IMG/VR virus record: IMGVR_UViG_3300023202_000247
Span: 62,001-126,000 of that record
Length of the DNA stretch: 64,000 nucleotides
Strand: one strand, 5' to 3'
Below, piece by piece: positions 7,305 to 57,549 of the stretch (its first letter is position 1; each line of letters starts with the position of its first letter). The notes under the pieces were generated by a model, which searched no databases, had not been told where the DNA came from, and saw nothing but the letters and a program-made list of their open reading frames with translations. The translations under genes were made by a program, and so were the position numbers.

Positions 7305-7525
7305 AAAATGAAAAGATTAAACTCGGGCTGATCAAGCTGTTTCAGAAAGTTCTTGACAACAAGACTGATGATGTGCTACCATTGTTGAATAGTGTTGCAT
7401 CCGTAAAAGATGTATTGGACTGGTCAGCTCGCACAGTTGGTTACAAAGATGTTGACGAGTATGTAAAAGAACATGGCAAAGATGGTCTGGTTGCGATGTT
7501 GGAGTACAAACTAAAGGGTGAGTGA
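7301..7525 (+). CDS. hypothetical protein
   Basis: ATGA-coupled ORF directly upstream of cas12f-like gene. Confidence 0.6.
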   Translation: MKNEKIKLGLIKLFQKVLDNKTDDVLPLLNSVASVKDVLDWSARTVGYKDVDEYVKEHGKDGLVAMLEYKLKGE

Positions 7526-9825: not shown

Positions 9826-9850
9826 CATTCAACTGCTTCTGAGTTAGATT
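9822..9850 (+). promoter_or_regulatory. sigma70-like promoter for the structured RNA
   Basis: TTGACA 9822-9827, 17-nt spacer, TAGATT 9845-9850. Confidence 0.7.
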
Positions 9851-9856
9851 GGCTTT

Positions 9857-10069
9857 CGTGATGAAGCCAGTATCACACAGCCTCTCACAAGTAGGGCAAA
9901 ACATCTCGCTAACGTTCCTCGGAACGATCGTCCGTAAGGACAGCTACGATACGCCGTTGGTATCCTTCGGGAAACCTGCGGAAAACAACGGGGTGACTGC
10001 ACACCCTAAGGCGAGTGTACCGAAAGTAAGGGGCTGTGTAATGCTGGCGTCACAAAAAGTATCGTAGCT
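9857..10069 (+). ncRNA. structured RNA, candidate tracr/omega-type guide scaffold for the dCas12f
   Basis: Long stem 9858-9885 with 10029-10053 (three G-U pairs favour + strand); hairpins with GUAA and cUUCGg loops; 11-bp pseudoknot agctacgatac 9942-9952 with gtatcgtagct 10059-10069. Confidence 0.7.
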
Positions 10070-10684
10070 AGATGCTCCGTTGGTTTGCAAAGCCTCAGAG
10101 CCAGCAGTGTGACGTTACTGCTTAAAATTTTTACAAAGGGATGCTGTGCTCTTACAGACCTCATCCTAAAGTATCGTAGCACAGTATGAAGTGTCGTGCA
10201 CAAATGCAGTAAGCGGTTGCTATGATGGGTTGGTTTGTAAAGATAATATAAGTATCGTAGCAGAAAGTGCAACTAGCAGGCGTTGGTTTGCAAAGGACGC
10301 TGTGCTCTTAAAAAGTCACAGACGATCTGTGTGTAGTGAAATCGGAGAAAAATGACCGAAAAAGAACTGAAACATTATGTTCAGAACAACCTGGGGGATG
10401 GTGGTTTCATTGAAAAATCCGAAGGATACTGCCTCATAGGCGAATTCAATGGTCCAGTTCGACATGTTTACGGATTCGGTAGAACATGGGCCCAAGCATA
10501 TGAATCCGTCTTCAAAAAAAATCTAAACTGATGCTTAATGCTGGCATCACAAAAAGAGGTCACAGACAAGTATCGTAGTTAGATGGAGCCTCAGTGGTAA
10601 CGCAGAACGTCTTCATAGATCAAATACAGTGACAGCCTCGTCTCAATTTTTACAAAGGATGCTGTGCTCCTAAAAGTCACAGAC
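10059..10684 (+). CRISPR. degenerate CRISPR-like array (motifs gtatcgtagc, gttggtttgcaaag, and hairpin repeat caaaggatgctgtgctcctaaaagtcacagac)
   Basis: gtatcgtag at 10059,10171,10252,10570; gttggtttgYaaag at 10079,10229,10282; hairpin repeat at 10134-10159,10291-10323,10653-10684, stub 10559-10567; irregular spacing. Confidence 0.5.
10352..10531 (+). CDS. 59-aa hypothetical protein inside the repeat region
   Basis: RBS ggag, MTEKELKHYVQNN...KKNLN*; below ORF-track cutoff. Confidence 0.6.
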   Translation: MTEKELKHYVQNNLGDGGFIEKSEGYCLIGEFNGPVRHVYGFGRTWAQAYESVFKKNLN

Positions 10685-10695
10685 AACAATTTACA

Positions 10696-12767: not shown

Positions 12768-13208
12768 ATGGAAAAGCTACGAGTAGAGATTGACTGTCAT
12801 GGTAACAAGATGTATTACAAGTGGGATACGGATGAACTGCATAATCCATATGGTCCAGCTGTTGAAGGTGCAGATGGAGATAAAGAATGGTATCTAAACG
12901 ATAAGCTTCACCGAGAAGATGGCCCTGCTATTGAAGGTGCAGATGGAGATAAAGAATGGTATCTAAACGATAAGCTTCACAGAGAAGATGGTCCAGCAGT
13001 TGAATATGCATATGGACATAAAGAGTGGTATGTAAACGGTAAACGTCATCGTGAGGGTGGTCCTGCTGTTGAACATGCAGATGGATATAAAGAATGGTAT
13101 GTAAATGGTACCAAACTGACAGAAGAAGAGTTCAACAGTCGTCACTCATTTTGTACCAGCAAGATTGTAGAGATTGACGGAAAACGTTACAAGCTAGAAG
13201 AAGTTTGA
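12768..13208 (+). CDS. HREDGPA-repeat protein, copy 3
   Basis: same architecture. Confidence 0.85.
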   Translation: MEKLRVEIDCHGNKMYYKWDTDELHNPYGPAVEGADGDKEWYLNDKLHREDGPAIEGADGDKEWYLNDKLHREDGPAVEYAYGHKEWYVNGKRHREGGPAVEHADGYKEWYVNGTKLTEEEFNSRHSFCTSKIVEIDGKRYKLEEV

Positions 13209-13211
13209 AAG

Positions 13212-13652
13212 ATGGAAAAGCTAAGATTAGAGATTGACTGTGATGGTACAAAAAAGTATTACAAGTGGGATACGGATGAGTATCATAATCCATATGGTCC
13301 AGCTATTGAATATGCAAATGGATATAAAGAGTGGCGGGTAAACGGTAAACGTCATCGTGAAGATGGCCCTGCTATTGAAGGTGTAAATGGAACTAAATTT
13401 TGGTATCTAAACGGTAAACGTCATCGTGAAGATGGTCCAGCAATTGAATTTGTAAATGGATCTAGAGAATGGTGGGTAAACGGTAAACGTCATCGTGAAG
13501 ATGGTCCAGCTTTTGAACATGCAGATGGATATAAAGAATGGTGGATAAATGATACCAAACTTACAGAGGCAGAGTTCAACAATCGTCACTCATCTTGTAC
13601 CGGAAAGATTGTTAAGATTGACGGAAAACGTTACAAGCTAGAAGAAGTTTGA
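13212..13652 (+). CDS. HREDGPA-repeat protein, copy 4
   Basis: same architecture. Confidence 0.85.
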   Translation: MEKLRLEIDCDGTKKYYKWDTDEYHNPYGPAIEYANGYKEWRVNGKRHREDGPAIEGVNGTKFWYLNGKRHREDGPAIEFVNGSREWWVNGKRHREDGPAFEHADGYKEWWINDTKLTEAEFNNRHSSCTGKIVKIDGKRYKLEEV

Positions 13653-13655
13653 AAG

Positions 13656-14096
13656 ATGGAAAAGCTAAGATTAGAGATTGACCATCATGGTACAAAAAAA
13701 TATTACAAGTGGGATACGAATGAACTGCATAATCCATATGGTCCAGCTGTTGAATATGCAAATGGATATAAAGCTTGGTGGATAAACGGTAAACGTCATC
13801 GTGAAGATGGCCCTGCTATTGAAAGTGTAAATGGAACTAAATTTTGGTATCTAAACAATAAGCGTCATCGTGAAGATGGTCCAGCTATTGAACATGCAGA
13901 TGGACATAAATCTTGGTATCTAAACGATAAACTTCATCGTGAAGATGGTCCAGCTTTTGAACATGCAGATGGATATAAAGAATGGTATGTAAATGGTACC
14001 AAACTGACAGAAGAAGAGTTCAACAGTCGTCACTCATCTTGTACCAGCAAGATTGTGGAGATTGACGGAAAACGTTACAAGCTAGAAGAAGTTTGA
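13656..14096 (+). CDS. HREDGPA-repeat protein, copy 5
   Basis: same architecture. Confidence 0.85.
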   Translation: MEKLRLEIDHHGTKKYYKWDTNELHNPYGPAVEYANGYKAWWINGKRHREDGPAIESVNGTKFWYLNNKRHREDGPAIEHADGHKSWYLNDKLHREDGPAFEHADGYKEWYVNGTKLTEEEFNSRHSSCTSKIVEIDGKRYKLEEV

Positions 14097-14099
14097 AAG

Positions 14100-14498
14100 A
14101 TGGAAAAGCTAAGATTAGAGATTGACTGTGATGGTACAAAAAAGTATTACAAGTGGGATACGTATGAACTGCATAATCCATATGGTCCAGCTATTGAATA
14201 TGCAGATGGAGATAAATTTTGGTATGAATTTGCAGATGGAGATAAAGCTTGGTATCTAAACGGCAAACGTCATCGTGAGGATGGCCCAGCTTTTAAATAT
14301 GCAAATGGACATAAAGAATGGTATGTAAATGGTAAACTTCATCGTGAAGATGGTCCAGCTATTGAATATGCAGATGGAGATAAAGCTTGGTGGATAAATG
14401 ATACCAAACTTACAGAGGAAGAATTCAATAGTCGTCACTCTTGTGCTGGTAAAGTTGTGGAGATTGATGGAAAACGTTACAAACTAGAAGAAGTTTGA
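14100..14498 (+). CDS. HREDGPA-repeat protein, copy 6 (internal in-frame deletion)
   Basis: KFWY-EFADG junction lacks part of one repeat. Confidence 0.85.
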   Translation: MEKLRLEIDCDGTKKYYKWDTYELHNPYGPAIEYADGDKFWYEFADGDKAWYLNGKRHREDGPAFKYANGHKEWYVNGKLHREDGPAIEYADGDKAWWINDTKLTEEEFNSRHSCAGKVVEIDGKRYKLEEV

Positions 14499-38591: not shown

Positions 38592-39011
38592 GTGAGTCTT
38601 CTAGATATATTAAAGAAAGAAAAGCTTTCTGCGATGAAAGCAAAGGACACTGTCCGGCGTGACATTCTAAGTCTCGTTATCGGTCAAGCTCAACAACAAA
38701 ATGTTTCGGATGATGCGGCGCTTCATGGTATCATCAAGAAACTAATCAAGAGCAATGATGAAACTTATGAAAGTGCGCGCGATGACATGCGAGATCAGCT
38801 GAAGGAAGAAAACAATATTCTTCAATTCTTTTTGCCAAAAGAAATGTCTCGTGATGAGATAATAAAGTTTATCGATGACAATGTTGACATTGCATCAGCT
38901 CAATCTGATGGCCAAGCAATTGGTCAGGTTATGAAAGCAATCAAGAATCAGAGCACCCCAGTAAACGGAAATCTAGTTAAAGAAATCGTAAACGAGAAAC
39001 GTAACAAATGA
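38592..39011 (+). CDS. GatB/YqeY domain protein
   Basis: AMKAKD, ILQFFLPKEMS..I, GQVMK. Confidence 0.85.
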   Translation: MSLLDILKKEKLSAMKAKDTVRRDILSLVIGQAQQQNVSDDAALHGIIKKLIKSNDETYESARDDMRDQLKEENNILQFFLPKEMSRDEIIKFIDDNVDIASAQSDGQAIGQVMKAIKNQSTPVNGNLVKEIVNEKRNK

Positions 39012-42000
39012 CAGAATCAATCTTTGACCAAGTACTGGCAAACCAAAAATCAATAAGCAGAATTGATAACGATCCTCAAATTTTTTATGCTCTCATCGGG
39101 CTCATGCGCAAGCAAGATCCAAAGCAGTATGAGGAAAAGTTTGGTGAACTTAGAAACACCTTAGAAGAATATCTCGTCACAATCGAGAGGGATTACGAAA
39201 TCCTGGCAAACGCTGAGCGCAGTTTGTTCGAGGAAATTCGTAAAACCACAAAACGTCGCAATCCTTTTGACGGGTTGCAAGAGCAACAAGACGATCTATA
39301 TGATCGCTTCTTCGACACGCTCGCGCCCAACTTCATTCGTGTACAAAAGCAAGTTCTGCTTCAAATACGAGATTACTTTCGTACCTTGGTAAAAGTTGTG
39401 GCTGATTTGCAGCCACGAACTTTGATGATTGCTGAAGATGCTAAGGTAGATTTTTCATCCACCGATTCCATCAACAAAATGATGGGTGAGATGAATCTAA
39501 ATAAAGGTCATGTTCGGGACTGGGTGAACTCCGTCATCCATCTAGACAAAGCTGAAGAAGCTCTTGCTCAAACAGCTGACAATGTTGTTGGTTATGTTGA
39601 AACATATTATACGTTTCTGATGAATCGACACAATTCAGAAGGTGTCGCCATTCATCGCGATCCCATCGTTACAGATTTGGCACTTCTAATCTATCAAAAC
39701 ATCGATGCCCATGGTGAGATTGATGGTGGTAAGGATCCTGAAGAGTTGAGCGCATATTCCATGCGTAAAGCTGAGATAATTGTTGATGCAATTTCTCAAG
39801 GATTTGTTTGGGACTTTATAAAAAATCCAGATAGCTTTACCGCTTTCATTCGTGAAGCATTTGAAGGTGCAAGCAAAAAAGTTAAAGCCTTGATGTCTCT
39901 TTATCGTACAGAGATAGATAACCTTAATGCCATCGTTAACTGGAAAGGTCTCAGCTTTGGTGGTTCGGATGCAGCAGAGCGACGACTAAATCGTCATCTA
40001 GATTTTCTAGGAGATGTCGATCCCAACTCGATTCGTGAACAAGAAGATACAAAGCTTCTTTCAAAAGAAGAGCGCTACAACCGCGAGTTCAAAAACAAAA
40101 CGATTGCTCACATTGTTGAGCTTCTTACACACGAGAAGCCACAGATGCGAGAGATCATCGATTATGTTCTCGCACGAAAGAAAGAACTGCGTGTATTCTT
40201 CCACGAAGAAAACAGCTTTTACGTTTGCAGAATTGGACAGGGCAATCCATTTCTCGGGACAGCCCCGGGTGCATTAGAGGTAATCCCAGGCACTCGTCCT
40301 ACCGCAAGCATGGACGACATTATCGGAAGTGGCTTTGCAGAGATTAAAGAGTTTGTTGGCCACATTGAAGATGCTGGTAAATGGCATGATTTGTTTCTTG
40401 CAACAAGTCCAAGTAAAACAACTGATAAAAGTAATGTATTACTTGTTGGACCGATGGGATGTTTAGCTGGAGAAACATATATTCAATTTGAAGTCTACGA
40501 TGAAGAAGGGAAAAGAGTCAATCACAAAGGTGGAACAATAGAGCGTTTGTATCAACGCTTCCATGATTTGCTACAAACTCACGGTAGTCATCCTCAAAAT
40601 AACAACGGCACTTTTTGTGTATCATCTGTTAATGATGAGGATCGTATCTTAATTAACAAGATAGAGGACGTTGTTAAAACTGGTGAGAATGAATGCTATG
40701 AACTTACAACTGCCAGTGGTGACTCTATTATTGCAACAGCTGATCATCCATTTTTCAATGGTGAAAAATATATCGAACTTCAAAATTTGAAAGAGGGTGA
40801 TTTTGTCACACTGCATAGAAATAAAAAGTACACGGGTGATGCTCCTATTGATAAAAATAAGAGATCCAATGATAGAAAATATTTGTATGTCAAGAATCAC
40901 CCAATAGCTGAAAAAAAGATTGTTAATGGCAAATATGAATATTACAGACTTGTGCGCGCAAGAGCTGTAATGGAAGCTCATATTAATAACTTGTCTCTTG
41001 ATCAATATGTTTCTATGTTGAACGATGGGGAAGTTAATGGTCTTTCTTTCTTAGAAAGAAACCAACATGTTCATCATATTGATGAGAACATACTAAATGA
41101 TGAGCTTAACAATCTTGTTATCATAGATAGAGCGGAGCATAATAGTAAACATGCACGCGAACATCAAAACAATCTCAGGTTTGAGATTGTTAGAGATAAA
41201 ATTGTATCAATAAAATCTGTTGGAAAAAGAACAACTTATGACATAAAAATGTCTAAGCCTTATCATAATTATGTTGCAAATAATTTTGTTGTGCATAATT
41301 GTGGAAAGAGCGAAATGCTCAGAGCTGTTGGTTGTGATAAAAATAGTCTCGGCATTTACGCACAAGGTTCGGATTTTCTTACTTGCTGGAAAGGCGAGGC
41401 AGAAAAGAATCCCAAGCGCTTGTTCGAATCCGCTGTCAAGCTGCAACGTGAGAGCAAAAAACATGTTCACATTCTAATTGATGAGATTGACTCTGTGCTC
41501 TTGAAACCAGAGTTCATGAGCTATGGAGACTCTAATTTGTCTTTGGAATTTCAAATGATAATGGATGGTGTGGTTCATTATCCTCACCTTAGTGTGTGGG
41601 GCACGACCAACCATCCCGAGCGAATTCCGATGCCGATGATTCGAAGATTCTCAAAGGTACTCATCGTTGGCGAATTGAGCGTTGATGATCGAGAGACGCT
41701 GCTCAAAACCTTTATTGGTAGTAACCTACCCATTGCTACCGTGAAGGCAGGAGAGTGGAAGATGCTTAGCTCCAAGCTCGAAGGTGCAACTGGTGATATC
41801 GTTCGTAAGGTTGCCGATCATCTATGGCGTACAAAGATGAGTTGGTTCGTTGCGAATCACGAAAAAGATGCAGAAAAGCTCGTCGAGTTCCTTAATCGTG
41901 ATGGTCAATTTGAAATTGACACGTTTACCAAAGAAGAGCGCGGAGAATTCAAGACGAAACTTTCAGATTTCTTCGAGGTAACGGCAGATGATATCAATGC

Positions 42001-42118
42001 AGCCATCGATGTTCACTTGAGAAACCCGGCAATCAATGCGGAAATTGAAGTTGCACAAGAAACTTACGCGCAAGCTCGTGAGTTCCTTAACCAATTGGAC
42101 GCTGGCAAAATGGAATAA
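39008..42118 (+). CDS. AAA+ ATPase interrupted by an intein
   Basis: Walker A GPMG/CGKS split by intein; ILIDEIDS; TTNHPERI..RRF. Confidence 0.88.
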   Translation: MTESIFDQVLANQKSISRIDNDPQIFYALIGLMRKQDPKQYEEKFGELRNTLEEYLVTIERDYEILANAERSLFEEIRKTTKRRNPFDGLQEQQDDLYDRFFDTLAPNFIRVQKQVLLQIRDYFRTLVKVVADLQPRTLMIAEDAKVDFSSTDSINKMMGEMNLNKGHVRDWVNSVIHLDKAEEALAQTADNVVGYVETYYTFLMNRHNSEGVAIHRDPIVTDLALLIYQNIDAHGEIDGGKDPEELSAYSMRKAEIIVDAISQGFVWDFIKNPDSFTAFIREAFEGASKKVKALMSLYRTEIDNLNAIVNWKGLSFGGSDAAERRLNRHLDFLGDVDPNSIREQEDTKLLSKEERYNREFKNKTIAHIVELLTHEKPQMREIIDYVLARKKELRVFFHEENSFYVCRIGQGNPFLGTAPGALEVIPGTRPTASMDDIIGSGFAEIKEFVGHIEDAGKWHDLFLATSPSKTTDKSNVLLVGPMGCLAGETYIQFEVYDEEGKRVNHKGGTIERLYQRFHDLLQTHGSHPQNNNGTFCVSSVNDEDRILINKIEDVVKTGENECYELTTASGDSIIATADHPFFNGEKYIELQNLKEGDFVTLHRNKKYTGDAPIDKNKRSNDRKYLYVKNHPIAEKKIVNGKYEYYRLVRARAVMEAHINNLSLDQYVSMLNDGEVNGLSFLERNQHVHHIDENILNDELNNLVIIDRAEHNSKHAREHQNNLRFEIVRDKIVSIKSVGKRTTYDIKMSKPYHNYVANNFVVHNCGKSEMLRAVGCDKNSLGIYAQGSDFLTCWKGEAEKNPKRLFESAVKLQRESKKHVHILIDEIDSVLLKPEFMSYGDSNLSLEFQMIMDGVVHYPHLSVWGTTNHPERIPMPMIRRFSKVLIVGELSVDDRETLLKTFIGSNLPIATVKAGEWKMLSSKLEGATGDIVRKVADHLWRTKMSWFVANHEKDAEKLVEFLNRDGQFEIDTFTKEERGEFKTKLSDFFEVTADDINAAIDVHLRNPAINAEIEVAQETYAQAREFLNQLDAGKME
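40460..41299 (+). mobile_element. intein (280 aa) with HNH homing endonuclease
   Basis: C1 CLAGET, ATADHPF, HVHHIDEN..NNL..EH..KH, NFVVHN/C. Confidence 0.92.
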
Positions 42119-44955: not shown

Positions 44956-45046
44956 AAGATTAGAGTTTAACAGTTGTCACTCATCTTGCGCTGGCAAAGT
45001 TGTAGAGATTGACGGAAAACGTTACAAACTAGAAGAAGTTTGAAAT

Positions 45047-45487
45047 ATGGAAAAGCTAAGATTAGAGATTGACCATCATGGTAACAAGAGATACTACAAG
45101 TGGGATACGGATGAGTATCATAATCCATATGGTCCGGCAATTGAATATGCAAATGGACGTAAAGAGTGGTGGGTAAACGATAAGCGTCATCGTGAAGATG
45201 GCCCTGCTATTGAAAGTGCAAATGGATCTAAATCTTGGTATGTAAACAATAAGCTTCATCGAGAAGATGGTCCAGCTATTGAATATGCAAGTGGAGATAA
45301 AGTTTGGTATCTAAACAACAAGCTTCACCGAGAAGATGGTCCTGCTGTTGAATGGGAAGATGGAGATAAATCTTGGTGGATAAACGGTGTCGAATTTACA
45401 GAGGAAGAGTTCAACAATCATCGCTTATCTTGTACCGGAAAGATTGTAGAGATTGATGGAAAACGTTACAAGCTAGAAGAGGTTTGA
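45047..45487 (+). CDS. HREDGPA-repeat protein, copy 9
   Basis: same architecture as 11.8-16.8 kb copies. Confidence 0.85.
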   Translation: MEKLRLEIDHHGNKRYYKWDTDEYHNPYGPAIEYANGRKEWWVNDKRHREDGPAIESANGSKSWYVNNKLHREDGPAIEYASGDKVWYLNNKLHREDGPAVEWEDGDKSWWINGVEFTEEEFNNHRLSCTGKIVEIDGKRYKLEEV

Positions 45488-45490
45488 AAT

Positions 45491-45931
45491 ATGGAAAAGC
45501 TACGAGTAGAAATTGACTGTGATGGTACAAAAAAGTATTACAAGTGGGATACGGATGAATTCCATAATCCGTATGGTCCAGCTGTTGAATATGCAGATGG
45601 AGATAAATTTTGGTATGTAAACGGTAAACGTCATCGTGAAGATGGTCCAGCAGTTGAATTTGCAAATGGAGATAAATTTTGGTATCTAAACGGTAAACTT
45701 CACAGAGATGATGGCCCAGCTTTTGAATATACAAATGGAGATAAATTTTGGTATCTAAATGATAAGCGTCATCGGGAAGATGGTCCAGCAATTGAATGGA
45801 CAAATGGACATAAAGAGTGGTGGATAAATGGTACCAAACTTACAGAAAAAGAGTTCAACAGTCGTCATTCATCTTGTACCGGAAAGATTGTTAAGATTGA
45901 CGGAAAACACTACAAACTAGAAGAGGTTTAA
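45491..45931 (+). CDS. HREDGPA-repeat protein, copy 10
   Basis: same architecture. Confidence 0.85.
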   Translation: MEKLRVEIDCDGTKKYYKWDTDEFHNPYGPAVEYADGDKFWYVNGKRHREDGPAVEFANGDKFWYLNGKLHRDDGPAFEYTNGDKFWYLNDKRHREDGPAIEWTNGHKEWWINGTKLTEKEFNSRHSSCTGKIVKIDGKHYKLEEV

Positions 45932-46127
45932 ACGTCACAAACCCAAGGAAGAGCTGTACGATCTGTGGGAGGCAGTGGACGATGAAGCTGATGTACCGAT
46001 GATGGAATGGTTACATCGGATTATATTCGTTCCATTGTCATTGAAACTGGACGGGTGGCCGATTTAATAAAATCGTCATCTTTTGATTGCGCACTGCGAT
46101 GAGATAAGCTATGATAGCCGAAGCCCA

Positions 46128-46209
46128 GATGAAGAAACTCAAAGGATGCTGTGCTCCTAAAAGTCACAGACAAACTCAAAGGATGCTGTGCTCCTAAAAG
46201 TCACAGACA
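46128..46209 (+). repeat. two spacer-less tandem 37-nt hairpin repeats (left flank)
   Basis: aaactcaaaggatgctgtgctcctaaaagtcacagac at 46135-46171 and 46172-46208. Confidence 0.9.
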
Positions 46210-46242
46210 AATGATCCGTTACATGCCTGAGGTAAAAGAACC

Positions 46243-46704
46243 ATGAAAAATCTAGAAGACATTGGATCTGTTTTTGCTCCCAAAACAGGGGCAAGTGTTT
46301 ATTCGATACTCGAAAATATCTTTGAAGAAAGTAAAGATGTTGCTATCGAGTATCGTTCATTTGTTACAGAATTTCGCAGAGTTGTGGAAGTTATAAATGA
46401 ATATATTAACCGAAACTTTCACCCATCGATAAAAGTTTCAGTAGTAAAAGATGAACGAAATTTTTATCATTTAGTACTTAAAAAAGCTGGCCTGTCTGTT
46501 GCTGGTAAGTATGAATTTAAATTAGGCACGTTTTCCAAACGTAAACAAAATGATCTATGGTACTTTCATTATTGCTCAGAACAGGGCGATGACTATAACA
46601 AATATATACAAATTAAATCAATTAGCGAAATTGAAAATGCTGTAGCTACGGTCCTGTTAGATGAAGAAATATCTAACAGACTGAAAAAATTCGTGTTGTC
46701 ATGA
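46243..46704 (+). CDS. hypothetical protein between identical 82-nt direct repeats
   Basis: RBS gaggt; ORF track. Confidence 0.7.
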   Translation: MKNLEDIGSVFAPKTGASVYSILENIFEESKDVAIEYRSFVTEFRRVVEVINEYINRNFHPSIKVSVVKDERNFYHLVLKKAGLSVAGKYEFKLGTFSKRKQNDLWYFHYCSEQGDDYNKYIQIKSISEIENAVATVLLDEEISNRLKKFVLS

Positions 46705-46707
46705 AAG

Positions 46708-46789
46708 GATGAAGAAACTCAAAGGATGCTGTGCTCCTAAAAGTCACAGACAAACTCAAAGGATGCTGTGCTCCTAAAAGTCACAGACA
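46708..46789 (+). repeat. two spacer-less tandem 37-nt hairpin repeats (right flank)
   Basis: identical to 46128-46209; units 46715-46751 and 46752-46788. Confidence 0.9.
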
Positions 46790-46926
46790 CACAGTATGTA
46801 AACATCGGTGATGCAACTCCTCAAAAGCTTGCCAAGCTCGCAGAGTTTGTAAGCAAATCTGTTTCGGCTCAGAGTCAGAATGTTAGTTCCGGCAAAGCTG
46901 CTCCAGTTGCATCAATCAAGTTCTAA
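46789..46926 (+). pseudogene. orphan 3' end of a probable vWA/TerY-like gene
   Basis: TQYVNIGDATPQKLAKLAEFVSKSVSAQSQ..IKF* with no convincing start; followed by terminator. Confidence 0.5.
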
Positions 46927-46947
46927 ATCACGTCCAGAAATTTAGGG

Positions 46948-46984
46948 AGAAGGCCCTGTCCATTTGGGCGGGGCTTTCTTTTTG
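46948..46984 (+). terminator. Rho-independent terminator
   Basis: gaaggccctgtcc-attt-gggcggggctttc + T-run. Confidence 0.7.
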
Positions 46985-46992
46985 GAGCAGTT

Positions 46993-48588
46993 ATGAAAAA
47001 GAAACTACTTTACAGTATTCTTGGAATTGCAATTTTTCTGCTCTCTGCAAGACTCATCATCCCGTATGGAGCAAAACTATACGTTGAAGACAAGTATGGC
47101 GTAGAGATAAGCCACTGTAAATTTGATGGGCTGGCTAACCTAGAGTTCATCAACATAACTAGCAACAATATTAAACCCTTCAATGGTGCTCTTAAAAGGG
47201 TAAGTGTTGATTGGTTTCAAAAAACCATAAAGATTACGGGTGGTTATGTAAGATATAACTATGGAGATAAAAAGAGGGCGATTAGTAACAACAGCCATAA
47301 AAAATGGAATGTTGCTGTTTATGATTTAGATGTGTATATTGCTCATGATTTGGGCACCATTAGTTTGCAAGATGTCAATTATTACCATGGTGTTGTGTTT
47401 GCAGAGCGTGCATTCGGTAATTTGAATCGAATAAGATTCGACGCAACTGGTTTGAAATATATGGACGAAATTGTAGCTGTTGAATATGCTACGGTGTACC
47501 ATAATTATGATATACAACTACCAACGTTTAATCCTGGAAAAAAGATAAATATTACTAGGGTAAAGTTTTCCATACCCAATAAAAAGGGATACATTGGTAG
47601 CGCTGAGTACGGTCCGATTCAACTTGGCAAAGCCGAGATAAGTACAAGCAACAATCAGATAACGGCAGATATAAGTGAAATATCTATAAAGCATAATTGG
47701 TTTGGAAAAGAGCGTGTAAAGTTTAAGGACATTGCGCTCAAGTATATTGGTGATAACAAAATTCGTTTGTTTAATCACGGTGCATCTGCTACGATTGATT
47801 TGAACGAGTTATCAATCAAAGGTTCCGGGTCTTGTCTTGATTGGGTAGCTATGGCACCCAAAATTGATTTTACAAGAATCGAATCTTTAGATGATTTTTA
47901 TTTTATTGGCAACCTCTCATTTGAAGTTGGTATCAAACCACCGGTATTTAAACTTGAACAAAATTGTCAGTTTAAATGCTCGTCTCATTTGATTCGTTTT
48001 CTTTTTGCACCAGAGGGTTTTGCCTATGTGGCTTACAAGCCTGATGGTAAAAAGTATATTAGAATAACAAGTCCGTCGAGAAAAACCTGGATTCCTCTTG
48101 AATCTATCAGTCCACATGTGGTGCGTTCTGTTGTTGCTTTGGAAGACCCAGGATTCTATAGTCACAAGGGTATCATACCCAATGCTTTGAAGAATTCACT
48201 CATTGCAAATCTTCAGACGGGTAAGTTTAGCCGTGGTGGTAGTACGATTACTATGCAATTGGCTAAGAATCTTTGGGTTGGGCGTGATAAAACCATAACT
48301 AGAAAAATACATGAAGCCATGATGACCATGGCATTAGAATCATGTATGACAAAAGATAGAATATTGGAGTTTTATCTCAACGTTATAGAGTTTGGTCCAA
48401 AGATATACGGTATCGGCGCTGCATCACAATACTACTTCAATAAATCACCAGCGCTATTAGATGAAACTGAAAGTTTTTATCTAGCAATGATCCTTCCACG
48501 TCCCAACTCTTCCGCCCCGCCAAACCAGGGTGGATTAATTTACGCACGTAAGTTACGAGAAAGATTGAAGAAAAATGGCGGAATATAA
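46993..48588 (+). CDS. peptidoglycan transglycosylase (GT51) domain protein
   Basis: EDPGFYSHKG, GGSTITMQLAKNL, RKIHE, KDRILEFYLN, YGIGAASQYYF; N-terminal TM. Confidence 0.9.
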   Translation: MKKKLLYSILGIAIFLLSARLIIPYGAKLYVEDKYGVEISHCKFDGLANLEFINITSNNIKPFNGALKRVSVDWFQKTIKITGGYVRYNYGDKKRAISNNSHKKWNVAVYDLDVYIAHDLGTISLQDVNYYHGVVFAERAFGNLNRIRFDATGLKYMDEIVAVEYATVYHNYDIQLPTFNPGKKINITRVKFSIPNKKGYIGSAEYGPIQLGKAEISTSNNQITADISEISIKHNWFGKERVKFKDIALKYIGDNKIRLFNHGASATIDLNELSIKGSGSCLDWVAMAPKIDFTRIESLDDFYFIGNLSFEVGIKPPVFKLEQNCQFKCSSHLIRFLFAPEGFAYVAYKPDGKKYIRITSPSRKTWIPLESISPHVVRSVVALEDPGFYSHKGIIPNALKNSLIANLQTGKFSRGGSTITMQLAKNLWVGRDKTITRKIHEAMMTMALESCMTKDRILEFYLNVIEFGPKIYGIGAASQYYFNKSPALLDETESFYLAMILPRPNSSAPPNQGGLIYARKLRERLKKNGGI

Positions 48589-50322: not shown

Positions 50323-50564
50323 TGTCTGGTGACAAAATTGCGCTGATTAATTCGTGGCTCAAGTGGCGTCCACGAGGGTTGGTAATCATGCCGGCAAGAT
50401 CATATAATGGTGGATACTCTCATCCAAATGTCATTCGTTATGAGGGTGATAACCATTATGAAGCTGGTAAATCATTTACATATGATCTAAACAAAGAGCC
50501 AAATAAAAGCCTAATTGTTGCTTTGAAAAAAGCTTTTAACAGGTCAAGTGGTTCAGATGTCTAA
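50322..50564 (+). CDS. hypothetical protein
   Basis: TAATG-coupled start MSGDKIAL. Confidence 0.5.
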   Translation: MSGDKIALINSWLKWRPRGLVIMPARSYNGGYSHPNVIRYEGDNHYEAGKSFTYDLNKEPNKSLIVALKKAFNRSSGSDV

Positions 50565-52416
50565 GATTAAAGAACTAGAAAAGAAAATCAATAAAGCGCG
50601 TCATGATTACTACAATCATCAACCAACAGTTGATGATGACGTTTTTGATGCTTGGGTTGATGAGCTAACCGAACTCGATCCAGATAACGAATCGGTAACA
50701 GCGATTGGTGCCGATATCGTTAGCAACTGGCCAGAGATGGTACATGATGTACCAATGGGTTCATTGAATAAAGTAAATGGACCAGATGCATTTGGCAAAT
50801 GGGCTGAAGATTGTGAGACCGTATCTGATATCTTTGGCACTGAAAAACTGGATGGCATCAGCATCAACACCATTTGGAAAGATGGTATTCTCGTTCATGC
50901 AGTTACCAGAGGTAATGGTAAAAAGGGTGAAGATATTCTACAAAACGTTCGCCGAATGGAAGGTGTTCCGAAAAAGCTGAAGAACTTTTCTGGTAATATT
51001 CGTGGAGAAATCATTCTTCGCAAAAGCAAATTTGAAAACGTTGCTGATCAATACTCCAACGTTCGTAACGCTGCTAGTGGCATTGCTCGTCGTTACGATG
51101 GCAAAGGGTCTGCCATTCTCACAGTGTTGTTCTATGAGATTGCTGATGAATCATTTGACACCGAACAAAAACAATTTGATCGTTTGAAAAGCCTCGGCTT
51201 GATGACACCGAACCATTGGCACTTCAACGATGTCGCTGCCGCCATTCAAAAGTGGCAAGACTATATGTCTTCGGAACGGGACAAACTTGATTATGATATT
51301 GACGGCTTGGTGTTACGAGTCAATGATATGAATGCTCAGTTTGCCTTGGGAGAGAAAAGTCATCGCCCCAAGGGAGCAATTGCATTTAAGTTTGATGCTC
51401 CAAAAGCTACATCGATTCTGAGAAAGATTACATGTCAAGTTGGCAACACTGGTGCTATTACTCCAGTTGCTGAGTTTGATGAGGTTACACTTGCTGGTGC
51501 TAAAATAACTCGTGCCAGTCTCTATAACTTCAAATATGTTGATGAGTTGAAAGTGGGGCCTGGTGCAGAAGTTCTCATCGTCCGAGCAAATGATGTGATT
51601 CCTCGTGTAGAGAAATGCATCAAACCTGGTCGAAAGTTTACTCCTCCCGATAAATGTCCAGAGTGTAGTTCACTCACCAAGTGGAATGGTGAGTACCTGA
51701 TGTGTACGAATGTTCTTAGTTGTCCTGCGCAAACCATTGGACGATTGAAGATTTGGATTCGTGAACAAAACATTTTGGAGTGGGGAGACAAAGTTCTCAA
51801 ACGTCTAATCGATGCTGAACTCGTTAGAGATGTTGGCGATCTTTACACCTTAACAGCGGATGACATTCAATCGTTAGAACGCATGGGTGAAAAGAGCGCA
51901 AAGAATCTCGTTGCCATCATGGACAAACATCGCAATCTTCCGCTCGAAAACTTCGTTGGCGGCCTTGGTATCAACGGTATTGGAACGTCCATGGTAAAGC
52001 TTGCAATTCGTGCAGGTTATGATACTTTGGATGCATTAAAACAAGCTAGCGTATCTGATTTTTCATCAATCGATGGATTCGGAGATATCAAGGCTGAGCA
52101 ATTTGTTGAAGGTTTGAGTAAAAACTCGAAACGTATGGACGCAATTCTTGCGGCCGGAGTGAAAATTGTTGCACGTCAGAAAGGTGTGCTAACGGGAAAG
52201 AGCTTTTGTTTTACTGGCAAAAGCGCCAAGCCTCGTGCTGAATTGCATAAGATTGTTGAAGGCGCTGGTGGCGATGTGAAAAAGAGCGTCGGCAGAGGGC
52301 TAAACTTTCTCGTATTGGCGGACCCATCTTCTGGTAGCAGTAAAGCTAAAGCCGCAAAGAAACTTGGAACCAAACTCATTTCCGAAGATGAGTTTTTGAA
52401 AATGGTAGGTATGTAA
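50557..52416 (+). CDS. ligA: NAD-dependent DNA ligase
   Basis: YYN, MGSLNK, EKLDG, TRGNG, RGE, DIDGLV, AIAFKF, OB, Zn finger, HhH, BRCT. Confidence 0.96.
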   Translation: MSKIKELEKKINKARHDYYNHQPTVDDDVFDAWVDELTELDPDNESVTAIGADIVSNWPEMVHDVPMGSLNKVNGPDAFGKWAEDCETVSDIFGTEKLDGISINTIWKDGILVHAVTRGNGKKGEDILQNVRRMEGVPKKLKNFSGNIRGEIILRKSKFENVADQYSNVRNAASGIARRYDGKGSAILTVLFYEIADESFDTEQKQFDRLKSLGLMTPNHWHFNDVAAAIQKWQDYMSSERDKLDYDIDGLVLRVNDMNAQFALGEKSHRPKGAIAFKFDAPKATSILRKITCQVGNTGAITPVAEFDEVTLAGAKITRASLYNFKYVDELKVGPGAEVLIVRANDVIPRVEKCIKPGRKFTPPDKCPECSSLTKWNGEYLMCTNVLSCPAQTIGRLKIWIREQNILEWGDKVLKRLIDAELVRDVGDLYTLTADDIQSLERMGEKSAKNLVAIMDKHRNLPLENFVGGLGINGIGTSMVKLAIRAGYDTLDALKQASVSDFSSIDGFGDIKAEQFVEGLSKNSKRMDAILAAGVKIVARQKGVLTGKSFCFTGKSAKPRAELHKIVEGAGGDVKKSVGRGLNFLVLADPSSGSSKAKAAKKLGTKLISEDEFLKMVGM

Positions 52417-52709
52417 TGGACCAAAGTTTATTAAATAAATTTTACCAAAACAATCTAAGTAAAGATGATATTGTAAATATAGTAAGATATCATGTTAGAT
52501 CCGGAATTTTGTATTATATAGATAATCTCCTTTACAATTTGGATGTTGAAAAAGTTAATCCAACATTATTGTTAGAAATGATAACAACAATTAAAAGCGA
52601 ACATAATGTAAAGAATCTTGCAATGTGGACTTACTTCATTGATCAGGTAAAAGATAAACATCCAAGTATCAAGCAAAGGTTGCGCTGGGCTCTCGGCCAG
52701 TACCCTTGA
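52416..52709 (+). CDS. hypothetical protein
   Basis: TAATG coupling. Confidence 0.6.
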   Translation: MDQSLLNKFYQNNLSKDDIVNIVRYHVRSGILYYIDNLLYNLDVEKVNPTLLLEMITTIKSEHNVKNLAMWTYFIDQVKDKHPSIKQRLRWALGQYP

Positions 52710-52724
52710 GCATGTTCATGACAA

Positions 52725-53534
52725 ATGACTAAAAGTTTTTCTGAGCGTCAAAAAGAGTACGAAAGTGCTTACGACCAAACTATAATAAAAAGAATACCGG
52801 TTATCATCAGGGTAGATGGGAAAAACTTTTCTAAAGTAACGAGGAAATTATCACGTCCTTATTGTCATAAAATGATGCGCACCATGCAAGAAACCATGCT
52901 GTATGTTGCGCGTGATTTGGGCGGATGTGTTTTTGCCTATACTCAAAGTGATGAAATATCATTCGTTCTACGAAACGATCAAGAATTAGACACAGAGCCG
53001 TGGTTTGGCAACCGAACTCAAAAGCTGAGTTCTGTGGTTGCGTCGATGACTACTTATCATTTTAACAACTTGGTAAACAATAGTCTCGATCCTCCGCGAC
53101 TGTGCGGTATGCCCTGCTTTGATGCTCGAACATTCGGTGTGCCCGACTTCAATGAAACGATAAACAATCTATACTTCAGACAAACAGATTGTAGACGAAA
53201 TTCTATTGAGGGAGCTGCTAGAGCTGAGATTAGCAAAAAGGTTGGAAGTAAAACTGCTAGAAAAATGCTTCACAAGAAAAGCATTGATGAGCAGTTAGAT
53301 ATTCTATATGATATGTGTCACATAGATTATGACCAGCACTATCCTGTAGAGTATCGCCATGGATCTGCCGCTTATCGTGCACCATGTGTAACAGATGATG
53401 ACAGCCCCAATAGAACAAAATGGATCATAGATCGAAATCTATCGTTGATGAATAAACAACGAAAATTTCTTTTGACCATTTTAGAATATGGTCAAGATAT
53501 ATTCAGGCCAGAACGTGATATCTCTGAAAATTAA
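52725..53534 (+). CDS. thg1: tRNA(His) guanylyltransferase Thg1-like (3'-5' polymerase)
   Basis: IRVDGKNFSK, YTQSDEISF, FGNRTQKLSS, FDAR, RQTDC.RNS. Confidence 0.92.
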   Translation: MTKSFSERQKEYESAYDQTIIKRIPVIIRVDGKNFSKVTRKLSRPYCHKMMRTMQETMLYVARDLGGCVFAYTQSDEISFVLRNDQELDTEPWFGNRTQKLSSVVASMTTYHFNNLVNNSLDPPRLCGMPCFDARTFGVPDFNETINNLYFRQTDCRRNSIEGAARAEISKKVGSKTARKMLHKKSIDEQLDILYDMCHIDYDQHYPVEYRHGSAAYRAPCVTDDDSPNRTKWIIDRNLSLMNKQRKFLLTILEYGQDIFRPERDISEN

Positions 53535-53892
53535 ACCTGATAAGTTCGATAGTGAGCTTACAGAAAAACAACTTGACGGCATTCAAAGCGTTTTGGAAAA
53601 CTCTTGTACCGGAAGGTTTTGTATAAGCAGATCCAAATTATATGAAAGTGTTAAAGATTTATTAGGCATTACTCTCGAAAAATATAGATTTGAGCGTGAA
53701 ATTACTAAAGCTATAAAGAATGGCAGCTTGAAAGGGTTTGAAACCAGACCCGGTAAGAGTGGTGGCATATGTAAAGCTGGTGTGTTTGACAAGTCTGAAC
53801 AGAAGCATCAGTGTAAGCAGTGTCAAAGATTCGAGCGCGAACTTCAATCGCTGCGAGAGAAGGTGCGGCTCTTAAGTGGACAGCACCCTTGA
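53488..53892 (+). CDS. hypothetical protein
   Basis: ORF track. Confidence 0.6.
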   Translation: MVKIYSGQNVISLKIKPDKFDSELTEKQLDGIQSVLENSCTGRFCISRSKLYESVKDLLGITLEKYRFEREITKAIKNGSLKGFETRPGKSGGICKAGVFDKSEQKHQCKQCQRFERELQSLREKVRLLSGQHP

Positions 53893-53988
53893 CAAAGTCA
53901 ACAGATGAGTTAAGTTGTGGTGACTGGAGTTTACAGCTCCACTGGAATAAAAAAAGTCGCTTGACAAAACCAACAGATGAGTTAGATT
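53889..53988 (+). promoter_or_regulatory. tandem near-identical promoters
   Basis: TTGACA 53889 N16 TAAGTT; TTGACA 53961 N16 TAGATT; both spacers contain caacagatgagt. Confidence 0.7.
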
Positions 53989-53991
53989 GTC

Positions 53992-54516
53992 TTGTATCAG
54001 CAAGGAATATCTCAAATGAGTTACGATAAACAATGTTTACTAAACGACACTGACGAGGATGTATTCTTCGTCGATGATGAAGCCAAGATGCCTGTTTACT
54101 TGAAGGAAATTCGAGACGGGGAATACATTGGCAAGCTTCAGTTCAATGGCACATTGGATTTTGAAGACGGCCTAACGTTCATGATCTTCACTGCCGACAA
54201 GATGGAGGAGGAAATCCAGATTGGTCCGAGTGATCCGAGGCGTTCTTCTCCCCATCGTGATAAGACGATTGAATTGGATAGGAACAGGATTCTGATTCGA
54301 CTCGAACAAAAAGAAGATCGTGATGGAAACATCTATCATTTTGCAGAGGTTCAGTGTCCAATGGCTGTTCTTCATGCACGACGAGGATTGTTTTTCCAGA
54401 TAAACACCAACACTGATGAAATGTGGATCTCTCGGCTCCGAAACCGGATGCGCCGCTTTCACCGAAATTCCGTTGACAGGCAGCCCCATTCGCGCTACGA
54501 TGAGCAGCACGCATAA
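53992..54516 (+). CDS. hypothetical protein
   Basis: probable start ATG 54016 with RBS aagga. Confidence 0.65.
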   Translation: MYQQGISQMSYDKQCLLNDTDEDVFFVDDEAKMPVYLKEIRDGEYIGKLQFNGTLDFEDGLTFMIFTADKMEEEIQIGPSDPRRSSPHRDKTIELDRNRILIRLEQKEDRDGNIYHFAEVQCPMAVLHARRGLFFQINTNTDEMWISRLRNRMRRFHRNSVDRQPHSRYDEQHA

Positions 54517-54970
54517 GGAAAATAAAATGATGAATAAAAATGTACGCTACGGCTACTTTACGGTCGATACGCCCAAAGGCAAAGGATATGTTTGTGTTCG
54601 TTTGCAACGACTCAAGTGTTTCTCAGATACCGCACCTATAAATGCAGAGGCAACCTTTTCTTTTTGCTCTCCAATGGATGCGCCGAAAGAGCCGTCTGAG
54701 CTTGGAAAGAATTTCAAGCGAAAGGCTCGGGCCATTGCGGATTCTCGAGCTGAATCAAATCGTATCAACCAAAAGGTTGAAATTCAGTTCAACCCTTCAA
54801 TTTCGCAAAGTATTCTCTTTAGAGAAATCTTGAACAAGGCGACCCAGGTTGATTCCGAAAAGAAGGATAAAAACGGTCGTCACTACAAAGTTGCTCCAGA
54901 CTGGGTGCGTAATGCTATGAAACAAGAAAGGGTTTCATTTGGGTTGCCCACCTCTAAACCATCAAACTAA
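54416..54970 (+). CDS. hypothetical protein
   Basis: probable start ATG 54528 with RBS aagga. Confidence 0.65.
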   Translation: MKCGSLGSETGCAAFTEIPLTGSPIRATMSSTHKENKMMNKNVRYGYFTVDTPKGKGYVCVRLQRLKCFSDTAPINAEATFSFCSPMDAPKEPSELGKNFKRKARAIADSRAESNRINQKVEIQFNPSISQSILFREILNKATQVDSEKKDKNGRHYKVAPDWVRNAMKQERVSFGLPTSKPSN

Positions 54971-54989
54971 GATCATGAGCGTATTGTAA

Positions 54990-55068
54990 CAAAGGATGCT
55001 ACGTTTCTTAAAACTGTAGACTATCGCGAGATGCAATAAAGGATGCTGTGCTCCTAAAAGTCACAGAC
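54990..55068 (+). CRISPR. mini-array: repeat-16 nt-repeat
   Basis: caaaggatgctacgtttcttaaaactgtagac 54990-55021, tatcgcgagatgcaat, aaaggatgctgtgctcctaaaagtcacagac 55038-55068. Confidence 0.55.
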
Positions 55069-55096
55069 CCCCGTCACACGTTGACGCTCATGATTT

Positions 55097-55127
55097 GAAG
55101 GCCGGTGTCATCATGACACCGGCCTTC
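55097..55127 (+). terminator. strong hairpin after the mini-array
   Basis: gaaggccggtgtca-tca-tgacaccggccttc; no clear U-tract. Confidence 0.55.
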
Positions 55128-55146
55128 GCCTATTGAGGAGATTCAA

Positions 55147-57549
55147 ATGTCATTTAAATATCAAGTTACTAAAATCAGCGATAATCATTATGTATTGGAA
55201 AAGATGAAAGATATGAAATGCGATGTACATGCATATCTTTCAGAAAAGCTATATAATCTCTCAGAAGAGGGATTGTGGACTCAAGCATATAATTCTGCAT
55301 CACACGAAGGTGTAAAGGGTGTGTACCTAATGCCTGACTGTTTGTCTGATGATACTGAGGTTTTAACGCCGCAAGGATTTACAAAAATATCAGAATTGTC
55401 TTCAGATACAAAAATTGCAAATGTTATAATCACGGATAAGGGTGCTCAAGGGGTTTATTGGAAAGAGCCAAAAGTAATTATACATAGAGAATTAAGAGAA
55501 AATGAAAGGGTTTTCTCACACACTTTTCAAAGATTAAACAAAAGTATTTTAACAACAGAAGGGCATAGGCACCCTTTTACTGTTAATGAATGTACAACTG
55601 ATATTATCAGCAAAGAAATGCCTAAAGAAGCCTTCGTTAAAAATTTTATTTGGTATGGAAATGATTCTGAAACTCGTCAGCGTATAAAACTTACAGATGA
55701 TGAAATAAAACTTATTACATGGATTGTTGGCGATGGAAATATAACACATAATAAAAATAACGCTAATAAAAGAATTAGGTTTGGGTTCAAAAAAATTAGA
55801 AAAATTCAGCGAGTAACTTTTCTTCTTAATGAAATTGGTCTAAATTATACTGTTTGTAAGTCTGACAAACAAACTGAAATTTATATAAACACAAGCTCTA
55901 GTCAAAAATTTATTGATATTGTTGGAGATAATAAAGAATATCCAAAGAATTGGATATCTGATTTGAATCAGAATCAAGCATCTATGATGATAGATGAAAT
56001 GCTAATGATAGATGGAGACTGGGAAAATCATAATAAAATGGGCAGTAGTGTCATATATACATCTAGAAAAACTGATGCTGATTTTATCAGCAGCGTTGTT
56101 TCTAAGTATATTGGGTGTGCAAACATTAAGTTTGATGAAAAAAGATATGATAATGGATGCTGGAAGATATCTATAATTAAAGGTGAAAATCTGCAAAAGT
56201 CATCTAAAAATGGTTTACATAATACTAAAGTTATAACCAATGTATCTAGCTATACAGGAAAGGTTGTTTGCATTACCTGCGACTCTGGGTATTTTATAGC
56301 TCGTCAAAATGGACTTACGTTTGTAACTGGTAATTGCCACCTCGGCTATGGCATTCCAGTTGGTGGTGTTGTTGTTACAGATGACGTTATCATTCAGGCT
56401 GGATCTGGATATGATATCTCGTGCGGTGTAGTGTATATGAAAGTTCCGAAGTTGCATGCTTCGGACATTGCAAGTTGGCAAAAGCGAGAGAGCTGGGTGC
56501 GTGAAGTATCCAAGCGTATTGCTTTGGGCGTTGGCTCTCATCGTCCGAGTAAGATGAAAGAGTTTCAATCTAAAGATACTCATGAAATCTTGCGTCACGG
56601 AGCAAAGGCAATCGGAATCAATTCTGACTTTTGTGAGCGACAGTTCATTCCGATTCGTGGCAACATCGACTTTGAAAAGATTGAAAAGGCTTGGGGCAAA
56701 GCTACTGGTCAGCTTGGATCGGTTGGTGGTGGCAATCATTTCGTAGAAATGCAAGTCGATGAAAATGATGGAAGTGTTTGGGTAATGATCCATTGCGGTT
56801 CTCGTGGTTATGGTTGGCAAACAGCTAATCATTTCTTTTACGAGGGCGCAAAGCATCGTGGCCTTCCCATGAATAGAAGAGAGTCCAGTTGGCTTCGTAT
56901 CGACGAGGATCTTGGCAAAGAATATTGGGCTTACCATAACAGTGCTGCAAACTATGCGGTGGCTAATCGTCACATCATCGTAGAGGGCATTCAGGAAGCT
57001 TTGCGCAAGGTTTGGAAAACTGAAGGCGAGCTTTACTACGAAATCAGTCACAACCTCGTTCAAGAGGAAACGTTGGTATTACCTGATGGTTCGCATACCA
57101 AAGGTTTCGTTCATCGTAAAGGAGCGACGAGAGCTTTTCCAGCTGGGCATCCCGATCTCATCGGAACCAAGTGGGAGAAGACTGGTCATCCATGTCTAAT
57201 TCCGGGCAGTATGTATGACGGAGCTGCAATCCTTTTTCCATTGGAAGGTGCTTATCAAACCGCGTGCTCAGTGAATCATGGTTCAGGTCGCCTCATGGCT
57301 AGAGGTCAGGCAAAGAAAAAGCTAAAGCCCAAGCAGCAGTTTATCGATGACCAGATGCGCACAGTGAAGCGTAAGCTGGGCGGCATCGAAGTCAGAGGTA
57401 TCGTAGGTAATACCAAGAAAACTCCACTTGATGAATGCGGTCACGTTTACAAGAATTTGGATGATGTGCTTGGAGTTCTAGAAGACGAAGGTATTGCAAA
57501 GGTAAAGCATAGACTGTACCCAGTTGCAAACCTAAAGGGTACCGACTGA
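55147..57549 (+). CDS. rtcB: RtcB RNA ligase interrupted by an intein
   Basis: MPD/CHLGYGIPVGG, GYDISCGV, GGGNHF, HCGSRG, SHN, HRKGAT, PGSM, HGSGR, YKNL. Confidence 0.95.
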   Translation: MSFKYQVTKISDNHYVLEKMKDMKCDVHAYLSEKLYNLSEEGLWTQAYNSASHEGVKGVYLMPDCLSDDTEVLTPQGFTKISELSSDTKIANVIITDKGAQGVYWKEPKVIIHRELRENERVFSHTFQRLNKSILTTEGHRHPFTVNECTTDIISKEMPKEAFVKNFIWYGNDSETRQRIKLTDDEIKLITWIVGDGNITHNKNNANKRIRFGFKKIRKIQRVTFLLNEIGLNYTVCKSDKQTEIYINTSSSQKFIDIVGDNKEYPKNWISDLNQNQASMMIDEMLMIDGDWENHNKMGSSVIYTSRKTDADFISSVVSKYIGCANIKFDEKRYDNGCWKISIIKGENLQKSSKNGLHNTKVITNVSSYTGKVVCITCDSGYFIARQNGLTFVTGNCHLGYGIPVGGVVVTDDVIIQAGSGYDISCGVVYMKVPKLHASDIASWQKRESWVREVSKRIALGVGSHRPSKMKEFQSKDTHEILRHGAKAIGINSDFCERQFIPIRGNIDFEKIEKAWGKATGQLGSVGGGNHFVEMQVDENDGSVWVMIHCGSRGYGWQTANHFFYEGAKHRGLPMNRRESSWLRIDEDLGKEYWAYHNSAANYAVANRHIIVEGIQEALRKVWKTEGELYYEISHNLVQEETLVLPDGSHTKGFVHRKGATRAFPAGHPDLIGTKWEKTGHPCLIPGSMYDGAAILFPLEGAYQTACSVNHGSGRLMARGQAKKKLKPKQQFIDDQMRTVKRKLGGIEVRGIVGNTKKTPLDECGHVYKNLDDVLGVLEDEGIAKVKHRLYPVANLKGTD
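55339..56334 (+). mobile_element. intein (332 aa) with LAGLIDADG-type endonuclease
   Basis: C1 CLSDDTEVLT, TTEGHRH, WIVGDG and MIDGD, FVTGN/C; AT-richer than exteins. Confidence 0.92.

Follow-up and report, generated by a model that had tools for sequence, protein, structure and literature searches.

Solitary CRISPR repeat units and mini-arrays in viruses are known as tools against host or rival CRISPR systems. Solitary units act as RNA anti-CRISPRs (Racr), tend to sit next to acr genes, and were described as not associated with cas genes in the virus (PMC10651486), while viral crRNA-like RNAs come in multiplexed units alongside Acr proteins (bioRxiv 10.1101/2024.10.29.618823) and crRNA-like regulatory mini-arrays are known (PMC10120712; PMC6858448). 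Type V-M effectors (Cas12m; V-U1 is the earlier name) use a crRNA with a 36-nt scaffold (stem plus pseudoknot) and a guide of roughly 20 nt, need no tracrRNA, cut their own pre-crRNA within or just upstream of each scaffold, and bind DNA without cutting it; the first seven scaffold nucleotides are disordered in the structure (PMC10442227, PMC11013384). V-M loci usually lack an adaptation module. In T4-type phages, the PeSL cassettes, an early promoter plus a terminator stem-loop, flank ORFans, recombine and release mini-circles (PMC2839356, PMC4122927). We describe here a jumbo-phage locus that shares features with each of these, in which an orphan gene lies between identical pairs of CRISPR-type repeat units.

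The window analysed is a 64,000-nt stretch, bases 62001–126000 of the 321,461-bp virus record IMGVR_UViG_3300023202_000247 (estimated 75% complete); coordinates are those of the window unless marked “genome”, which refers to the whole record. The original prediction placed a whole gene, like a cassette, between two identical 82-nt blocks, each of two spacer-less 37-nt repeats, and this observation is confirmed. The cassette region comprises the following features:

46128–46209 (+): left 82-nt block, 8 nt plus two abutting B-type CRISPR-repeat-like units (46136–46172 and 46173–46209) with no spacer.
46243–46704 (+): ORF153 (P0001), an orphan gene of 153 aa with an ATG start; GAGG, 11 nt upstream of the ATG, lies in the 33-nt stretch between the second unit and the ATG.
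46708–46789 (+): right 82-nt block, identical to the left one (units at 46716–46752 and 46753–46789), read here as the leader of a second, now gene-less unit.
46790–46992 (+): stretch led by the right block, holding a start-less open frame (46768–46926), then a weak GC hairpin and T-run, seen by eye only and not called by a terminator scan, before the transglycosylase gene (46993–48588).

The two blocks are 100% identical, and the unit has four exact matches where 0.00 are expected in 100 shuffles. The same structure was found in a contig from a different sample (a 122-kb record, L019) at 99.88% identity, or 4 SNPs, over 3391 nt, whereas short-read Logan contigs from other runs (L020, L024, L025 and L028) break inside the units, as expected for a dispersed repeat. 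The claim that the right block abuts a headless gene fragment is only partly confirmed: 46768–46926 is an open frame with no ATG that starts inside the unit, and since it has no family hit and no paralogue in the genome, as the flanks also have none, it may not be a gene remnant at all. The right block is preceded (46699–46720) by AAAGGATG, the first 8 nt of the unit core, which may be the stump of a third, internally deleted unit; the left block lacks it. The 59-aa ORF at 10352–10531 does lie between copies of the repeat, as had also been claimed, but the left copy is diverged (91% with a 1-nt insertion) while the right copy has the exact core.

No family, homologue or fold match was found for ORF153. 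Searches of viral contigs and the 5.8-billion word search returned no relative, an exhaustive HMMER search gave only low-complexity repeat hits, and Pfam, PHROGs, NCBIfam and PADLOC gave nothing above threshold. Its AlphaFold model is poor (pLDDT 60), and Foldseek against PDB gave nothing at E <= 0.001; the top XisI-like rows have E 0.05–0.2 and TM about 0.3, and we treat them as noise. Near relatives were absent from phage GenBank records, no relatives beyond near-identical strains were found for the cassette, and Rfam at gathering thresholds found only a tRNA in the window.

What the original prediction did not recognize is the identity of the repeat. An nhmmer profile of the 37-nt unit finds about a dozen full copies plus several degenerate ones, together with a regular array at genome 44040–45380, about 62 kb upstream of the cassette and outside the window, made of a closely related 36-nt repeat with 30–46-nt unique spacers. 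Directly upstream of this 12-unit array and its leader lies a 671-aa gene (P0005, genome 41906–43921) that matches PADLOC Cas12u1 (V-U1) at 1.8e-47 and the PDB Cas12m structure 23vw at 1.2e-24. In the alignment to 23vw, Asp aligns with Asp at two conserved acidic positions, while a further position, Glu in the reference, aligns with Ala-Lys, so that the RuvC triad looks incomplete, although which positions form the triad is our inference. No Cas1 is present in the record. The array differs between strains of the same phage through extra spacers, a three-spacer duplication and a fused spacer, and its spacers are GC-rich (0.50–0.73) against a genome of 0.41. One array spacer (genome 44876–44910, duplicated at 45089–45123; GC 0.29; conserved in three strains) matches the phage’s own genome 35/35 on the minus strand at genome 260161–260195, inside a 682-aa ORF with no family hit; the 5′ flank on the protospacer strand reads ...TTTATC, and the match reflects either self-regulation by a non-cutting Cas12m or a spacer taken from a kin phage. 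This is a genuine phage-borne type V-M CRISPR-Cas12m locus, and the cassette units, 85–90% like its repeat, are a variant of it.

Array-type (A) and cassette-type (B) units share a 31-nt core and differ mainly in one stem, CUACG...UGUAG against CUGUG...CACAG. We tested a two-stem pseudoknot (columns 7–11/20–25 and 14–18/31–35) on an alignment of 15 distinct variants: 90.6% of cells pair, against 50% or less when partners are slid; two pairs change on both sides between the classes (AU to GC, CG to UA); and the four substitutions seen on the 3′ strand of stem I all give G-U. The A/B covariation is, however, in effect one evolutionary event between two lineages, two B copies carry a G-to-A change that breaks a stem-I pair, and one copy (genome 171961) breaks two stem-II pairs. 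A distant Cas12m homologue on another very large, 496-kb metagenome contig (L031:11892–12436) has an eight-repeat array whose 38-nt repeat has the same topology with different letters, and an 86%-identical relative shows a third stem-II version. The orientation, with the guide 3′ of the repeat, agrees with the leader and the degenerate terminal repeat of the array. The variable first 5 nt and conserved 31-nt core of the unit match the published Cas12m scaffold with its disordered 5′ end. In the cassette the units abut with no spacer, and elsewhere B units are mostly single or in two-unit mini-arrays, not separated by unique spacers of about 30–40 nt; they are therefore repeat-derived units, not an array.

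B units are dispersed, all on the + strand (11 forward, 0 reverse) and apparently all between genes. Spacer-less tandems lie at 46136/46173, at 46716/46753, and inside the array at genome 44111/44148; two-unit mini-arrays lie at genome 57883/57960 and at 54986/55033; and singles lie at genome 32452, 34363 (partial) and 171961, and at window 10131 (degenerate), 10288 and 10649. Those in the window outside the cassette, with their context, are as follows:

7522–9003 (+): a second type V effector, Cas12f/V-U3-like (P0007; PADLOC 1e-32, PDB 9nzq 1e-18), whose first RuvC Asp aligns with Asn; a zinc-ribbon ORF and an HTH ORF follow it.
9850–10130 (+): a strongly structured non-coding region (z = −4.5, measured on the fold of 9850–10160), a possible guide-RNA scaffold, between the Cas12f-like operon and the first B-type unit.
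10131–10159 (+): degenerate B-type unit directly after the structured non-coding region.
10288–10324 (+): diverged B-type unit (1-nt insertion), 28 nt upstream of the 59-aa ORF.
10352–10531 (+): 59-aa orphan ORF lying between repeat-bearing modules (10039–10160 and 10536–10685).
10649–10685 (+): B-type unit with the exact core.
54986–55021 (+): array-type (A-like) variant unit, the first repeat of a mini-array.
55033–55068 (+): B-type unit, the second repeat of the mini-array.
55069–55127 (+): 27-nt GC-rich (0.56) spacer-like guide, then a 31-nt near-perfect palindromic hairpin (55097–55127), upstream of RtcB (55147–57549).

Six units end 13–57 nt before a start codon, four of them within 13–33 nt, and in those cases a purine-rich ribosome-binding motif lies in what would be the guide. 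The genes behind the units are orphans, except one excisionase/MerR-like HTH gene. At 54986–55127 the mini-array is clean, with 13 nt between its two repeats, and adjoins a cluster of RNA/DNA repair genes (50548–57549) that includes an NAD-dependent ligase, a Thg1-like gene and an 800-aa RtcB; an intein-containing AAA protein lies at 39008–42118. The sequences after the gene-proximal units have no target elsewhere in the genome, so they are not ordinary guides, and the spacer-like guides after B units had no exact hits in genome or viral collections; in the phage’s own genome there is only an 11-nt match near the gene downstream of genome 57883, which we judged too weak. The motif GTATCGTAG, in six of seven cases within (A)AGTATCGTAG, recurs seven times in this setting on the + strand (window 10059, 10171, 10252, 10570 and 17768; genome 46232 and 57804), several copies lying right after a full or truncated unit 3′ end. 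A 34-nt segment at 10611–10644 is inverted (32/34 as reverse complement) relative to genome 57845–57878, between two otherwise identical modules that each have about 53 nt of identical sequence upstream and a B unit downstream; it looks like a small invertible or flipped element.

Recombination between units is supported by the array itself. Its second repeat is a chimera, array-type over its 5′ two thirds and B-type in its 3′ arm, followed by the same one-base linker, AACTC, B unit and first bases as the cassette’s left block, and then by a 101-aa orphan gene (P0006). This insert is flanked by a 190-nt direct duplication comprising the last 21 nt of cas12m, the leader and the first repeat, at about 96% identity with a 20-nt indel. 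In the duplicated copy (genome 44530–44600), the 20-nt insertion completes a degenerate repeat-like element ending ...TAAAGATGTAGAC just before the leader, reminiscent of the crRNA-like autoregulatory mini-arrays described in cas loci (PMC10120712). With the 59-aa ORF, which lies between direct repeats of a larger unit-bearing module, three small orphan ORFs in this genome sit between direct repeats built from CRISPR-derived sequence, and one junction is a visible crossover within repeat homology. Empty or differently filled sites, which had been named beforehand as a check, did not turn up in the close strains available: their contigs are nearly identical at every unit and show no gain or loss at the cassette, and their differences lie in tandem families of 146-aa paralogous genes with a 69-nt internal period (MORN-like repeats; 44967–45931 and 12768–14498), whose copy number varies between strains. 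The record has no tyrosine or serine recombinase (PF00589 and PF00239 absent), and the mechanism is most simply general homologous recombination.

The interpretation offered in the original prediction, that the repeats serve as recombination sites for gene capture or excision (as a 580-bp circle) or as cleavage sites releasing single-gene mRNAs, is thus partly supported: exchange between units is supported, a dedicated capture or excision system is not, and the cleavage alternative is plausible by analogy with published Cas12m processing (PMC11013384, PMC10442227). We read the 82-nt block as a double crRNA-scaffold leader and the region as two consecutive leader-headed units, block plus ORF153 and then block plus a gene-less remnant that ends before the transglycosylase gene, rather than as a gene locked between recombination sites; each block precedes its own downstream stretch, and the same double unit also heads the gene inside the array. 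Our analysis establishes the identity and dispersal of the units, their kinship with the array repeat, the conserved structure and the recombinant A/B junction. The rest is inference, drawn from sequence alone: that the block was duplicated, or the ORF153 module inserted, by ordinary homologous recombination between units, as in the array, the perfect identity of the blocks pointing to a recent duplication, insertion or conversion; and that the units are transcribed with the downstream genes and bound, and probably cut just upstream of each scaffold, by a Cas12m-type protein. Such processing would yield one guide-less scaffold RNA and an mRNA whose 5′ end is a Cas12m handle with the ribosome-binding site in the guide position, and expression of these orphan genes would then be coupled to Cas12m. 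The B units could also belong to a different Cas12m than the phage’s own, although no second cas12m is in the 75%-complete record. We consider this overall reading about as likely as not, and cannot decide between regulation by the phage’s own Cas12m and decoying of a foreign one.

A bolder version, which is not excluded but which we consider unlikely, is that of CRISPR-repeat-bounded gene modules: the phage’s nuclease-poor Cas12m would recognize scaffold units in the 5′ leaders of orphan (possibly anti-defence) genes, cut polycistronic RNA there and stay bound to crRNA–mRNA chimeras, so that it controls their stability or translation, and the same units would serve as portable homology that moves single-gene modules around the genome, into the CRISPR array and between co-infecting phages.

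The best-surviving alternative, which remains possible though less likely, is that B-type units are RNA anti-CRISPRs or crRNA-like decoys that mimic the repeat of a V-M system of the host, a plasmid or a rival related phage; guide-less tandem scaffolds would soak up that Cas12m, the adjacent orphan genes would be protein anti-CRISPRs, as in the described racr–acr loci (PMC10651486), and the altered stem II would keep the decoys from poisoning the phage’s own Cas12m. The spacer-less or single units preceding orphan genes fit this, as does the difference in stem II between the phage’s array, the B units and a close relative’s array, and the array spacer matching phage-type DNA hints at conflict between kin phages. 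Yet no array with B-type repeats was found in viral, metagenome or plasmid collections, even with stem II left free in the viral and metagenome contigs (these were exact-pattern scans, except the plasmid blastn, which also found no copy of the block); this phage encodes a near-cognate Cas12m; and A- and B-type units occur together in one mini-array, which suggests one shared machinery.

It is doubtful that the unit is mainly a promoter, repeat-embedded or repeat-derived, with its −35 in the 5′ flank and −10 in TAAAAGT/TAAAGT, the block then being a tandem promoter cassette that heads small genes as in PeSL cassettes. The unit length (36 nt) equals a −35-to-start span, several single copies begin TTTACA with a 16–17-nt gap to the A-rich hexamer, genes start 13–57 nt after the unit’s end, and promoters occur inside CRISPR repeats in Neisseria. 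However, a sigma-70 scan finds no + strand promoter in 45800–47100, the hexamers score only 3–4 of 6, the tandem units have a poor −35 (AACTCA), and compensatory stem changes and G-U-preserving substitutions are not expected for a promoter; at 55033 a promoter reading would give a scaffold-less short RNA, while the mini-array reading is natural. A dedicated integron-like cassette system, in which the ORF excises through a recombinase, is improbable despite the identical direct repeats around a single promoter-less-looking ORF and the three such arrangements in one genome: besides the absence of a recombinase and of any empty site in the strains compared, the units are CRISPR repeat derivatives, not attC-like imperfect palindromes, and the junction in the array lies inside shared homology, as expected of homologous rather than site-specific exchange. 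An assembly artefact, either a falsely duplicated repeat or a mis-joined contig, is very unlikely even though short-read contigs break at the units, given the independent assembly from a second sample and blocks that are shorter than typical reads and enclose unique sequence.

If the units are handled by Cas12m, this would be a case of a DNA-binding CRISPR effector wired into a virus’s own mRNA leaders, and a natural source of orthogonal Cas12m scaffold pairs; if they are decoys, the neighbouring orphan genes are good candidates for the first anti-Cas12m proteins.

Like integron gene cassettes, the locus has a single ORF bounded by repeated elements, but with no integrase, attC structure, attI or Pc it is not a member. 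Like viral solitary repeat units, these are CRISPR-repeat look-alikes scattered in a phage genome outside arrays, intergenic and next to small genes of unknown function; here, however, the type is V-M, the phage also encodes the near-cognate Cas12m and an array, no outside array with this repeat was found in the collections searched, and the units form a separate sequence class with compensatory stem changes that occurs as spacer-less tandems on both sides of a gene, any inhibition of a CRISPR system being conjectural. The loci at 54986–55127 and genome 57883–57992 resemble viral mini-arrays in their repeat, short spacer, (repeat) layout with a degenerate first repeat, whereas no target, even partial, was found for their guides and the cassette units have no spacer, or have a gene’s 5′ UTR in the guide position. 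Compared with described type V-M systems, the homologous effector, the 36-nt repeat with stem plus pseudoknot, the incomplete-looking RuvC triad and the lack of an evident tracrRNA or Cas1 are shared; but the system is carried by a jumbo phage rather than a plasmid or actinobacterial chromosome, its effector has no close relatives in viral contigs and is only about 23–26% identical to its nearest homologues outside this phage lineage, its array is interrupted by a gene, one repeat-unit module being recombined into the array itself, and its repeat units are dispersed genome-wide. As with the PeSL cassettes of T4-type phages, in which recombination between copies shuffles single ORFan modules and a circle of gene plus one motif is the predicted by-product, a conserved short motif sits in front of ORFans in a large lytic-type phage; yet no composite promoter–terminator motif was detected, the only terminator call lying inside ORF153, the units derive from CRISPR repeats, and no mini-circle and no indel between relatives has been shown here. 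Whether handles or decoys, CRISPR repeats would here be acting as portable homology for shuffling single genes, a CRISPR-derived counterpart of the PeSL cassettes.
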